NCBI GenBank assembly: GCA_002269645.1
Contig: NIVC01002821.1
Coordinates: 1-64,000 of the forward strand
DNA: 64,000 nucleotides
Source: Macrostomum lignano
Lineage: Eukaryota
Direction of reading: 5' to 3'
The position numbers and the translations under genes are program-made. A model generated the notes under the pieces. The model saw only the letters and a list, made by a program, of their open reading frames with translations, did not search any database and was not told the origin of the DNA. This document shows positions 17,965 through 22,273 of the stretch, piece after piece (positions within the stretch are counted from its first letter, which is position 1; each line of letters starts with the position of its first letter).

Positions 17965-18913
17965 TAAGAAAAATAACTAGATTGAACTAGATAGAGAAAA
18001 TAGTAAACAAAGACAAGTGAAGGTAGGCCTAAACTAAAGAAATGACTAAAGTTTTGACAATGTAGGATATATATATTATATTATCCTATATATATATCCA
18101 ATATCCTATTTAGAATACAGGACAGTTCGGTAACAGACAATTCGGTAACAGACAGTTCGGTAACAGCAAGGACAGTTCGGTAACATATTCAAGACAGTTC
18201 GGTAACATTTTCCAGGACAGTTCCGTAACGCCAGAAGACGACCATGTATGTACTGCCAAGTTTTTATAATGGGCCTTTTCATATTGCTTGCTCTGGTTCC
18301 AGAACCAGAACCAATTTGTGAAGTATAACTTTTTGTCTCCATAACTACAGGGAGATACGTGCTATAAAGTTTTTATTATTGAATGACAATCGCCAAGAAA
18401 AAAGTGAAAATTGTGCTAAGTTAGGTTGTTAAGGCAGTCAAATATTAACAGAGTTTAATTGTTATACTGCTGTTTTTCTTGGAATTCCGAACCGATTCTG
18501 GTTCTGGAATTTGTAATATGAAAAGGCCCAATGATGCATTTTATTTATTAGTGCATAAATTTTTTACAATAATTATGATAGACGTGTAATATATTTTAAG
18601 AGACATAAACACTGTTATAATTCATGCAACCATAACAATGCGGAGTTAGTTTATTTCGGAAGTTGGTAACTTTTGTTTGGATTTTTGTGATACACGTATA
18701 TAAGATACTGTAGCTACACTAAAATACAAGTATCGCTTGTAAAATATGTATAATAATTGTTTTTTAAGAACTAAGTATTGAAGCAAATACGACTCATACA
18801 TGTACATAAAAGTTACAGCTCGTTCAAATACAAACAATTACACTGTAGCACAATGTAAAAAATGTAAATATTCATGCATTGTTCAGTTACGCAACGCTCA
18901 CGAAAGCAATTGG

Positions 18914-20647
18914 TCACTTGGCGACTACATACTTGGCCACAGCACTTAGCAATTGAGCTGCCGTTTTGGTGCCTGCCTGGTACTCGGACCAATAACGCAT
19001 CAGCTTGGCCTCCTTGGTGCGCTGGGCAAGCCTCTGGTAGCGGCTAAGCTGCTCCTGAGACACCAGCTTAGCGTGAAGAGTGGCTACCCTCGCTTCATCG
19101 TAAAGGAGCGAGGCAAGCTTGTAGAAGCCCAGGTTGCCACTCCGTGCCCTTTGGTTGAGGCGATGATGGTAGCCTTCAGGCCCATTGTTCGTTCTGATGT
19201 TCCTGCGGAAGATGCTGATCTCGTCCAGCTGCCAGACTGTGCTGTTGAGCCATGTGTTAGCAACGTAATCGCACAGCTCTTGCAGCTGTTGGTTCTGGAT
19301 CGTCTGCTGCAGCTCAGTGAATGCAGCATGCATACAATTGCCTGGCAGAAACGGCAGTGCCATCAATTTGTGGCAGAAGGCCCGTACAGTCTCGTCGTTC
19401 GCGTAGGCTGGCTGCAGGCCCATTGACTGGATGTGTCGCCAAATTGCCTGGGAATAGTGAAAACTGCACCCATGCAGTTTCACACCTGCCAGAAAGACAG
19501 ACTTAGCAGCTCTCCACATTCCAGCTTCGTAATCGAGCACGATGCTTGTCAGTCGGCACTCGGGAAGCATATCCTTGAGAGCCCGCAGCGTACGTCGGTA
19601 GTCTCGCTTGCTCTTTCCGGACATCAGAATGTAGACCAGCGGTATCTGTTTGACTGACTCATTCTTGCGCACATTGCCGTGGAAGATGTAGAGCTGTAGA
19701 AAGGGCTCCTTCACGACGAAGAAGGTTCCGTCGCCGAACCACTCCTTGCAACGTCCCAGCAGCTGCAGTTGACGTTGGCTTGCGAAAATGAAGTGGCGCC
19801 TGCCATTCTCTTCGATGTAGACATCTCTTTGAAGGAAGTCATCCGGCAGTGCTTCTTCTTGAACTTGAAATTCCAGATCTCTTGGTTCCTGTGGGCGTTG
19901 TGCTGCTCGTGCTCGATTTGCAGCTTTTGCCAGCTGGTCCACTGTTGGCAACTGAGGCAGACCTCTTAAGCTGCCTTCATTCTGCAGCAGAAGTTGTTCG
20001 GCGATTTCAGCGGCGGGCCTGAAGAGCTCCTGCCGAGCTTGATCGCAGGCTTCCCGAACAATCAGTCGCCGTATCGATGGTTGCCCGACCTGGCGACATG
20101 TGTGCTCGTTCTTGCCGCTGATAAATGCGCCACTTGACTCGATAGCTGAAGCTGTGCATTTGGTGTGTGCGTTTCGGATTGTGCATCTCCAGTACGTTCT
20201 GTCTCCTCGGCTGAATTTTCGACTGTAGCTGAAGCCGTCAGAGCGGATCAAAATGTCCTTCTCCTTCTCAGATGCACGTGGGATTAGGGTAAAGACGATA
20301 GGCTCGACCTGTTGTGGTATGTGCTGTGGTGGAGCATCCTCTTCCATAGAGCTCTCCATCGGCTCGTCTTGGTGCTGGTGGTGGTGCTGTTGATGCTGTT
20401 GCTGCTGCTGGTGCTGTTGATGCTGGTGCTGGTGCTGTTGATGCTGGTGCTGGTGCTGTTGATGCTGATGCTGCTGTTGGCATGCTTCACATGACCAATT
20501 AAAGTCTGTTCCTTGAAACTCTCGGTATTGCTGCAGGGAGATTCCAGTGTTACACAAACGATGCTGCCATCGATTGCAAACGTCACACTGCAGAGCTTGC
20601 TGCCTGGCTCTTACAGCTGACTGACAGCGTATGCAATTATCGTCCAT
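18914..20647 (-). CDS. 577-aa MULE transposase: PHD finger, Q/H tract, FLYWCH-type zinc finger, DDE domain
   Basis: PHD CIRC...CDVC..WQHRLC...WSCEAC; FLYWCH-like GFSYSRK...TYWRC...C...NEHTC; catalytic FGDGTF, VLDYE, CSFH, RTNNGPEGYH. Uninterrupted ORF. Confidence 0.92.
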   Translation of the reverse strand: MDDNCIRCQSAVRARQQALQCDVCNRWQHRLCNTGISLQQYREFQGTDFNWSCEACQQQHQHQQHQHQHQQHQHQHQQHQQQQQHQQHHHQHQDEPMESSMEEDAPPQHIPQQVEPIVFTLIPRASEKEKDILIRSDGFSYSRKFSRGDRTYWRCTIRNAHTKCTASAIESSGAFISGKNEHTCRQVGQPSIRRLIVREACDQARQELFRPAAEIAEQLLLQNEGSLRGLPQLPTVDQLAKAANRARAAQRPQEPRDLEFQVQEEALPDDFLQRDVYIEENGRRHFIFASQRQLQLLGRCKEWFGDGTFFVVKEPFLQLYIFHGNVRKNESVKQIPLVYILMSGKSKRDYRRTLRALKDMLPECRLTSIVLDYEAGMWRAAKSVFLAGVKLHGCSFHYSQAIWRHIQSMGLQPAYANDETVRAFCHKLMALPFLPGNCMHAAFTELQQTIQNQQLQELCDYVANTWLNSTVWQLDEISIFRRNIRTNNGPEGYHHRLNQRARSGNLGFYKLASLLYDEARVATLHAKLVSQEQLSRYQRLAQRTKEAKLMRYWSEYQAGTKTAAQLLSAVAKYVVAK

Positions 20648-21354
20648 AGCAAAATGTTTAAAATAGTTTGAGTTAGTTTTATTTCGAAATTTCTAAAAAA
20701 TGTGGCAGCTATTTACAGCAGTATTTTACGCATTTCAAAATAGTGCCACCGATTTTCATTGGAGGAGCAATCCCGCAAGCCACCGTTTCCATGACATCAC
20801 AGCCACACCCCCATTCTTCTTCAGGGTCGCCTCGTGGTGGAGGAATTCTAGTTGAATAACATACATTTTATACATTTCACACATTAGGCTAGGCAATTGA
20901 CGGTTACTTGCTAATATGAGACTTAGATTCTGGAGTAAAGTTTAACGTGTCATACAAATATAGTGTATTTATTTACATGTAGCTACTACGTGCGCACAGG
21001 ATAAAGCATAGATGTAGATACTCAGTATGGTTTGTATCAACAAAAGACTGCTAAGCTTAGGCTCAGTCTTTGCACAATGTGGTTTAGGTTAGCTTTAGCT
21101 TTGCACAATTCAGCTTTGCAGAGCAAAATTGTAACAATAGAGGCTTAGCAAGTTCGTGTTGGGTATATTATTAAGACAGGGTTTATTTTTGAGGGCGATT
21201 TGGTGAGTTGGCTCACTTGGGAAAGAACTTGCGAAAAATCCACGGGGAGTCAAAAAGCACCTTTAGTATGGCTAGCTACCATGACGCATTCTGTGTATTG
21301 CTTATTCACCATCCTCTATCAGTCCCTCTCCTACTCTGTCTCTGTCTCAGCTTT

Positions 21355-21497
21355 CTCCCTCTCTCTCTCTCTCTCTCTTTCTCTCTCTCTCTCTCTCTCT
21401 CTCTCTCTCTCTCTCTCTCTCTCTCTCTCTCTCTCTCTCTCTCTCTCTTTCTCTCTCTCTCTCTCTCTCTCTCTCTCTCTCTCTCTCTCTCTCTCTA
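21355..21497. repeat. (CT)n microsatellite inside the MULE
   Basis: ~70 CT units with two ttt interruptions. Confidence 0.95.
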
Positions 21498-22273
21498 ATA
21501 TGCGCAACTTCGCTACTTCCTAGACTAGAGCTACATTGGTCATTCATTAGCCCATTAAATTTTTGCTAATATTTACGTAAGCTACACGCTATACAATGCC
21601 ATAGGTATAGCTAGGCTAGGGCAGGCAGGCTTTTAGTAGCTAAGCTAGAATGAAATTTGAATTATAGTTTACCTAGCATAGCCTAGCATGGGGGCCTATA
21701 CATCTAGACTATTCTCAATTTTTAATTTATTAATAGGCCTGCCAGCAAATTAAGCGTTAACCTAATTGTAGAGATTGCCATCATGCAGAGCCTGCATTGC
21801 CAGCATGCTGTTAGCAGCATTTTGCTGCGTTGTTTTGTGCTTGGAAGTAGCAAAATATTGTGACACGGCTGCCAGCCAGCAGCTGCAGCGTGCGCATGGC
21901 ATTGGTGAGTTCAAAAACTTTGTTAGTTGCATTCAATATAACAAATTTAACCATGCGAATAATACCTGTTAATGTGTAAATCGATAGTATCTAATTGACT
22001 TACTGTAATACAGTATATCTATGCTACTTACTCTCAGTAAGCTTGTTACCGATTTGTCCACAACTTGTTACCGAACTGTTCTTGGTGTTACCGAACTGTC
22101 TGTTACCGAACTGTCTGTTACCGAATTGTCCTGTCCCCCCTATTTATAGGTGCTCTTGGAAAAAGCAATTTTATTATTTAATATATTCTATATAAAGTCT
22201 ATGTTCTATGTTAAGTTATTCTATAACTTATATAGTAGGAACATACTACTTTACATAGAATATAATAAGAAAA

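Follow-up and report, generated by a model that had tools for sequence, protein, structure and literature searches.

A FLYWCH-bearing Mutator-like transposon of Macrostomum lignano whose transposase has an N-terminal Pygopus-like PHD finger

Introduction

Could a DNA transposase carry its own reader of chromatin? The question is raised by a 64,000-nucleotide (nt) stretch of DNA from Macrostomum lignano (contig NIVC01002821.1 of assembly GCA_002269645.1, positions 1 to 64,000 of the forward strand), referred to here as the window. An earlier note, made from the letters alone, had described in it a Mutator transposon whose transposase would join a PHD finger and a glutamine/histidine-rich (Q/H) tract to a FLYWCH finger and a D-D-CxxH-E core, and had left open whether this architecture is already catalogued. 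We find that positions 18113-22138 hold a 4,026-bp DNA transposon. On its sequence features, this is an autonomous-type Mutator-like element (MULE) that bears a FLYWCH finger and is Phantom-like by its domains and by the length of its target-site duplication (TSD), not by tree. The PHD finger at the start of its transposase resembles that of Pygopus and, judged by comparison with relatives, recurs as a conserved accessory domain in a large subgroup of the MULE family in marine animals, rather than being special to the copy in the window. Given the residues that it retains, we consider binding of this finger to the N-terminal tail of histone H3 plausible.

Results

The element has subrepeat-built ends and a perfect 8-bp duplication

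The element is delimited by terminal inverted repeats (TIRs) and a TSD, the latter read directly from the sequence:

18105-18112 (no strand): left copy of the TSD, CCTATTTA, 8 bp
18113-18207 (plus strand): left TIR, on the gene's 3' side, with five copies of the 15-nt unit GACAGTTCGGTAACA
18216-18230: degenerate sixth GACAGTTCGGTAACA unit, present at the left end only
22044-22138 (minus strand): right TIR, on the gene's 5' side, with five GACAGTTCGGTAACA copies spaced as in the left TIR
22139-22146 (no strand): right copy of the TSD, CCTATTTA, 8 bp, a perfect 8/8 match to the left copy

Each TIR is ~95 nt long, and the paired stretches (18117-18207 and 22044-22134, 91 nt) are 88% complementary. 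At each end, three abutting copies of the unit are followed by a 5-nt spacer, a fourth copy, a 7-nt spacer and a fifth copy, such that the gaps between successive units (0, 0, 5 and 7 nt) are identical at both ends. When up to two mismatches are allowed, the unit occurs 11 times in the window, always within the two TIRs, against an expectation of 0.07. Among 200,000 random flank pairs taken from the window, ~160 had an 8-mer repeated at symmetric offset by chance (~8e-4); hence, both TIR and TSD exceed chance. We rejected a 9-bp TSD (TCCTATTTA versus CCCTATTTA, matching at 8 of 9 positions), since the perfect 8-mer and the 8-bp TSD of an oyster relative (see below) fit better.

The transposase has a MULE-type catalytic core

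The element encodes a single protein, with its recognisable parts all on the minus strand; we found no second open reading frame (ORF) in the element, so no partner protein is encoded.

18914-20647 (minus strand): transposase ORF, 577 amino acids (aa) plus stop, uninterrupted and intronless
19175-19732 (minus strand): MULE/IS256-type DDE core, from D306 to E491, with D372 and C394xxH397 between them; the Pfam MULE match covers aa 306-400
20099-20242 (minus strand): FLYWCH (WRKY-GCM1-type) zinc finger, aa 136-183; 29.3 bits for PF04500, whose cut-off is 23.6
20369-20479 (minus strand): Q/H tract, aa 57-93, of imperfect CAG/CAC/CAT-type codons
20480-20635 (minus strand): N-terminal Pygopus-like C4HC3 PHD finger, aa 5-56

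The catalytic domain matches PF10551 (MULE) with 28.0 bits against a cut-off of 27.6, and does so only when aa 192-577 are scanned separately; relatives of the transposase, which have all three domains, score higher for MULE (34-45 bits). Across an alignment of 12 relatives, four residues (D306, E374, C394 and H397) show no variation, and two more (D372 and E491) are almost invariant. We built an AlphaFold2 model of the 577-aa protein from 50 relatives (mean predicted local distance difference test score, pLDDT, 89.3; predicted template modelling score, pTM, 0.75). The top match of the model in a Foldseek comparison with the PDB is the IS256-family transposase ISCth4 (6xg8, 6xgx, 6xgw; probability 1.00, E ~1e-5), followed by Hermes (hAT). 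ISCth4 is the best structural match to the catalytic body, at 12-14% identity, and differs from the window protein in being prokaryotic and in having neither PHD nor FLYWCH; a profile search with the catalytic body against PDB sequences gave no match, such that ISCth4 and Hermes were found by fold comparison only. A relationship between IS256 and Mutator is known, and the fold match fits it. The locus thus combines the features of a MULE: a DDE domain, a CxxH between the second D and the E, TIRs, and a TSD within the range of ~8-11 bp. The TIRs, the 8-bp TSD and the uninterrupted transposase ORF described by the earlier note are all borne out, and the domain order that it proposed (PHD, Q/H linker, FLYWCH, D-D-CxxH-E) agrees with the Pfam matches, the alignment, the model and the Foldseek results.

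The closest relative (P0001, from a sequencing-run assembly) is 66% identical over 99% of the protein and colinear from end to end. The overall ratio of nonsynonymous to synonymous substitution rates (dN/dS) between the two is ~0.08; dS is saturated in this comparison, such that the ratio is a qualitative sign of constraint only. Read in this way, the substitution pattern shows purifying selection, or long-term constraint, on the lineage, and not the age of the copy in the window.

That age had been addressed in the earlier note by the CpG content of the ORF, said to exceed that of decayed neighbours. The observed-to-expected CpG ratio of the ORF (0.71) is indeed above that of the 4 kb to the left (0.31-0.40), but the 2 kb to the right are higher still (0.86), and the window as a whole spans values of 0.07 to 1.09. 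With flanks this heterogeneous, CpG content does not single out the element or show a young insertion, and the case for youth made from it is weak and not established. Limited age is better argued from the perfect TSD and from the 577-codon frame, in which every functional residue is intact.

The FLYWCH finger and a variable, disordered linker

Residues W153, C155, C164 and H182 of the FLYWCH finger are invariant or nearly so among relatives, and we infer that C184 is the fourth zinc ligand. The AlphaFold model has a beta-sheet across aa 119-177, the region of this finger. The sole disordered stretch of the model (aa 68-104, pLDDT <50) covers the Q/H tract together with the acidic segment that follows; according to the model, the tract and the acidic stretch are a disordered linker that reaches to about residue 104. 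At the DNA level, the tract consists of imperfect repeats of 9, 21 and 27 nt. At the corresponding site, a different, Q/H/P-rich tract is present in the closest relative and an acidic one in the amphioxus relative; the oyster relative has none. Since the tract differs or is missing among relatives, we regard it as a lineage-variable and slippage-prone linker, which agrees with the flexible linker originally proposed.

The PHD finger is closest to that of Pygopus

When the full protein is scanned, the PHD finger scores just below the Pfam cut-off (PF00628, 22.3 bits against 24), whereas aa 1-60 alone score 29.2 bits. Its eight ligands (C5, C8, C21, C24, H29, C32, C53 and C56) have the canonical C4-H-C3 spacing and are invariant across 20 relatives, in which W27, Q28 and R30 are nearly invariant; the family consensus is C-x2-C-x3-V-x2-RQ-x-ALQCD-x-C-x2-WQHR-x-C-x-TGI[ST]-x3-YR-x(n)-W-x-C-x2-C. 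The best matches among PDB sequences are Pygopus 1 and 2 (E 0.002-0.006), followed by the PHDs of KMT2C/D. In the model, the domain has a pLDDT of 84-95 and superimposes on the Pygopus PHD with a root-mean-square deviation (rmsd) of 1.1-1.6 A over 54-56 columns (Foldseek; template modelling score 0.70-0.81, 27-31% identity). The earlier note had let its claim of a PHD finger stand or fall with a profile match and with the presence of the finger in other copies; the match was obtained for aa 1-60, and the finger is present in P0001 and in at least 25 diverged relatives.

We used the PDB sequence alignment of the finger to project it onto the histone-contacting residues of hPygo1 (PMC2726290). 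The positions that contact the constant part of H3 correspond as follows: V350 to V12, A356 to A18, I357 to L19, E360 to D22 and Y379 to Y41; the pocket-dividing W366 corresponds to W27. All six positions (V12, A18, L19, D22, W27 and Y41) are conserved across the transposon family. H3 binding by hPygo1 is lost or strongly reduced upon mutation of W366, A356, V350, I357 or E360 (PMC2726290).

The PHD-FLYWCH-MULE layout is widespread in marine animals

A profile search of 1.84 billion cluster representatives showed the FLYWCH-MULE family to be very large: counted at 50% identity, 29,299 of its clusters reached E <=1e-3, and 3,154 of them E <=1e-30. We surveyed the PHD in 157 proteins, namely the best 150 of the 29,299 representatives together with matches from the first search. 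Within this sample, the finger is recognised in 26 proteins by its ligand pattern and in 28 by the PHD profile. A FLYWCH motif is found in 93 of the 157; a PHD is present in 25 of these and missing from 39 whose N-terminus is 80 residues or longer, and the N-terminus of the other 29 is too short to tell. The sources of the family are cnidarian-like, mollusc, annelid, echinoderm, cephalochordate and fish, with named members from Saccostrea echinata, Branchiostoma belcheri, B. floridae, Asterias amurensis, Nucella lapillus, Patella caerulea and Engraulis encrasicolus. The presence of a fish host in a family otherwise from marine invertebrates raises the question of horizontal transfer. The Engraulis protein (P0012, 1885 aa) is a gene model that starts with the same PHD and matches the profile in nine stretches; it probably represents several fused copies. 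A profile search with the PHD alone found no other domain context for it, only short stand-alone ORFs (48-114 aa) with the same PHD type in coral, whelk, tubeworm and further assemblies. A second profile-based search, of a word index, yielded no new relatives, and low-complexity Q/H words probably dominated its candidate retrieval.

Two relatives could be compared at the level of the whole element. The oyster locus (L002, Saccostrea echinata) is a 5.7-kb element at 3660-9359 with an 8-bp TSD, ATAAAAAC (span with TSDs 3652-9367), and TIRs of ~70 nt built of the 16-nt unit GTCGGACYATAACA. About seven introns interrupt its gene model, compared with none in the window ORF, and the outermost bases of the element are mismatched beside a clean TSD. 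The short strings TCGG and TAACA are common to GTCGGACYATAACA and to the window unit GACAGTTCGGTAACA. The amphioxus locus (L003, Branchiostoma belcheri) has ~390-nt TIRs (2796-3185 and 6229-6652) with 96-100% identity, composed of subrepeats of ~20 nt of the TTTCCCCGTC type, and a C-terminally truncated ORF of 467 aa lies between them. It looks like a young, internally deleted copy, and we did not identify a clean TSD around it. These two loci indicate that subrepeat TIRs, an 8-bp TSD and a PHD-FLYWCH-MULE transposase are the plan of the family and not a peculiarity of the window.

On the question of prior cataloguing, the architecture turns up widely in public protein sets, where dozens of proteins have automatic PHD_Pygo, FLYWCH and MULE matches, including NCBI models from oyster, amphioxus and whelk; the database labels of these relatives are "uncharacterised", "hypothetical" or "MULE transposase domain-containing". 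With dozens of relatives of the same layout, the window element does not stand alone and is a good example of a group that already exists but is unstudied.

Comparison with known systems

Phantom elements combine FLYWCH with MULE and are listed with TSDs of 8-10 bp (Marquez & Pritham 2010, as summarised in PMC6446971), in agreement with the earlier note. The window element is like Phantom in having a MULE DDE transposase, a FLYWCH finger N-terminal to the core, TIRs, a TSD within the listed range and an animal host; it differs in its N-terminal Pygopus-like PHD and its Q/H linker, neither of which is listed for the Phantom groups in Table 1 of PMC6446971. For Rehavkus, the same source gives a 9-bp TSD, a minisatellite ahead of the 3' TIR and a PHD within the transposase, and it has no FLYWCH entry. 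Rehavkus therefore shares with the window element the joining of a Mutator-type transposase to a PHD finger. In a comparison of listed features and not of trees, the window element departs from Rehavkus in its 8-bp TSD, in its FLYWCH finger and in its simple repeats, the sole internal one being a (CT)n microsatellite located 5' of the ORF. In some MULE transposases of Ciona and C. elegans, the PHD is C-terminal and adjoins a WRKY-GCM1 finger of the insert type as well as two classic zinc fingers (PMC1702500). By contrast, the PHD of the window element is N-terminal, its DNA-binding finger is a FLYWCH and its TSD is 8 bp. The combination of PHD and MULE is therefore already on record, and the N-terminal Pygopus-like PHD before FLYWCH is an unstudied arrangement within a known kind; we found no description of it in the literature searched, which did not extend to Repbase.

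The PHD of Pygopus itself (hPygo1/2 and Drosophila Pygo) is the top match to the finger in both sequence and structure (~30% identity), with the six equivalents of H3-contact positions kept. The transposase PHD lacks equivalents of Y341 and D352, and it sits in a transposase rather than a Wnt co-activator. We know of no BCL9-like partner for it. In concept, there is a likeness to RAG2, a PHD chromatin reader coupled to a DDE-type recombinase, and to chromodomain integrases. Tetrahymena Tpb2p, as described in PMC3861120, likewise couples a chromatin-binding module to a DDE-type recombinase. None of these has homology to the window protein beyond the PHD fold. In RAG, the PHD is on a separate subunit, whereas the window element has it on a single polypeptide, where its function is predicted.

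Further repeats and the genomic setting

Two further repeats lie inside the element:

18270-18530 (no strand): internal inverted repeat, its 35-nt arms ~190 nt apart and 74% complementary, within the element's 3' non-coding part
21334-21496 (no strand): (CT)81 microsatellite, in the 1.4-kb non-coding stretch between the ORF start and the right TIR

The inverted repeat may be a nested insertion resembling a miniature inverted-repeat transposable element (MITE). Outside the element, ~120 nt past the right TSD, a 45-nt inverted repeat (22261-22403; 84% complementary, 53-nt loop) may be a small hairpin or a MITE remnant.

Host exons lie on either side of the AT-rich stretch into which the element has inserted. 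GC-rich ORF segments on the minus strand have domains of host type: Asparaginase_2 (13063-13626, E 6e-27), SIR2 (41876-42847, E 4e-17) and His_Phos_2 (48780-49409, E 1e-8). These matches to host genes place the Mutator element in an AT-rich stretch ~4.5 kb from an asparaginase-like exon. The window is also dense in long minisatellite arrays with 18-58-bp units (for example 1007-3168, 4073-5318, 10662-11637, 33102-34282, 34930-35630 and 44043-44612), many of which are GC-rich with a strong strand skew, and which produce the majority of the long "ORFs" listed for the window's six frames. A second TIR-bounded element spans 36082-40235, with 48-nt arms (36082-36129 and 40188-40235) that are 92% complementary. 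Subterminally, it carries tandem arrays in which AGATAAC/GTTATCT motifs abound (36204-36684 and 39651-40084), and further inside a 58-bp minisatellite (37066-37691); it contains no ORF longer than 103 aa and looks like a non-autonomous DNA transposon. Scans of the window with Rfam and for tRNAs found nothing.

Discussion

Our favoured explanation of the locus, which as a whole we consider probable, is an intact FLYWCH-MULE that moves by cut-and-paste and whose transposase uses the PHD as a dock for the H3 tail and the Q/H tract as a tether. By analogy to the WRKY-GCM1/FLYWCH-type fingers that serve as DNA-binding domains in MULE transposases (PMC1702500), the FLYWCH finger would bind the 15-nt units of both TIRs, pairing the ends. 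The RNase-H-like DDE core with its CxxH would then perform cut-and-paste transposition, expected from IS256 and hAT-like chemistry, with an 8-bp staggered cut of the target giving rise to 8-bp duplications. The Pygopus-like PHD is predicted to dock the transposase on the nucleosomal H3 N-terminal tail, and this docking is predicted to bias the choice of integration site or the efficiency of integration, with the Q/H tract as a flexible tether between the chromatin anchor and the DNA-binding and catalytic body.

The part of this explanation that assigns a histone tether to the PHD, in line with the chromatin-guided transposase suggested by the earlier note, is tentative, and we lean somewhat against it even though the contact residues are retained. 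Several observations count against it. Two walls of the K4me2 cage are not kept: D3 stands in place of Y341 of hPygo1, and A14 in place of D352, at positions that both vary among the relatives. With two cage walls missing, specificity for methylation state cannot be predicted, and binding itself may be weak. In comparison with P0001, the PHD also evolves at 3-4 times the rate of the remaining protein (dN 0.48 versus 0.11-0.18). The 39 relatives with a long N-terminus but no PHD indicate that the finger is dispensable for transposition in the family. To our knowledge, the transposase PHD has no rear-face partner. Such a partner boosts H3 binding by the Pygopus PHD, and the fly Pygo PHD alone has no detectable H3 binding (PMC2726290).

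What else might the finger do? Cross-brace domains of PHD-like fold can bind DNA: according to PMC5861402, the cysteine-rich domain (CRD) at the C-terminus of piggyBac binds a TIR repeat sequence-specifically and is essential for transposition. With this precedent, with many TIR units that could serve more than one DNA-binding domain, and with two methyl-lysine cage residues gone, the PHD-like finger might be a module for binding DNA ends or assembling the transpososome rather than a histone reader. We nonetheless regard this as unlikely. The FLYWCH finger already supplies a DNA-binding domain of MULE type (PMC1702500); the nearest matches in sequence and structure are the histone-reading PHDs of Pygopus and KMT2C/D and not piggyBac CRDs; the conserved positions are those of the H3-contact residues of Pygopus; residues 1-57 have no net positive charge (six Arg versus six Asp/Glu); and many family members, judged by their number, transpose without a PHD. 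The finger could also be a protein-protein surface, contacting a host cofactor in the way that the Pygopus PHD contacts BCL9 HD1, or serving oligomerisation or regulation, with no direct part for chromatin. The Pygopus PHD does have a second, partner-binding face (PMC2726290), and conservation in the family reaches past the H3 contacts (e.g. Q16, Q28, R30 and T34-G35-I36); on the other hand, the element encodes no partner, and the broad host range of the family would be easier to reconcile with a universal H3 tail than with one host protein, given a horizontally mobile element. We consider such a surface quite improbable. That the "PHD" is a chance pattern of Cys and His has a negligible probability: the full-length Pfam score falls short of the gathering cut-off, but the possibility is excluded by the score of the domain alone, by the invariant ligands in 20 relatives and by the fold superposition (1.1 A to the Pygopus PHD), and homologues have precomputed PHD_Pygo matches.

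A separate alternative is that the copy in the window is not an active transposon at all but an immobile relic or a gene retained by the host. Its mobility is called into question by the outermost 5 nt of the ends, which differ at three positions (GAATA versus GGGGA), by a TIR identity of only 88%, and by the lack of any further copy: no second copy of the element was found, and the exact protein is absent from the contig index searched. The (CT)81 microsatellite and the possible nested inverted-repeat insert inside the element point the same way. However, the TSD is perfect, the subrepeats are equally spaced at both ends, and the ORF is open over 577 codons with all catalytic residues and zinc ligands intact. 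The oyster relative also has mismatched tips beside a clean TSD, which suggests that imperfect tips may be normal in the family. Moreover, domesticated transposases normally lose their TIRs, and those of the window element are still there. We therefore judge a relic or a domesticated gene to be rather unlikely, and retain the transposon with a putative H3-docking PHD as our preferred account. A scan of metagenome contigs for a TIR 19-mer gave one match only, a single unit on a bacterial contig with LacI-like genes, which we rejected as chance.

The window element in itself is an ordinary, well-preserved MULE, and the wider point is the recurrence of an N-terminal Pygopus-like PHD on FLYWCH-MULEs across marine animals. 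We put forward, as a doubtful conjecture from conserved residues, that this large clade of cut-and-paste Mutator elements docks on H3 tails through the PHD, and that integration or excision would be steered by nucleosomes or by the state of H3K4. If the histone-tether interpretation is true, the element would be a natural, single-polypeptide, chromatin-guided DDE transposase, for which the intronless 577-aa copy is a convenient test case; with its defined TIRs, the ORF could readily be moved to a transposition assay in yeast or cell culture. Chromatin-based target choice has so far been studied mainly for retroelement integrases and RAG. Should the PHD bind H3 tails, this clade would provide a simple natural model for chromatin reading in the target choice of a DNA transposase.

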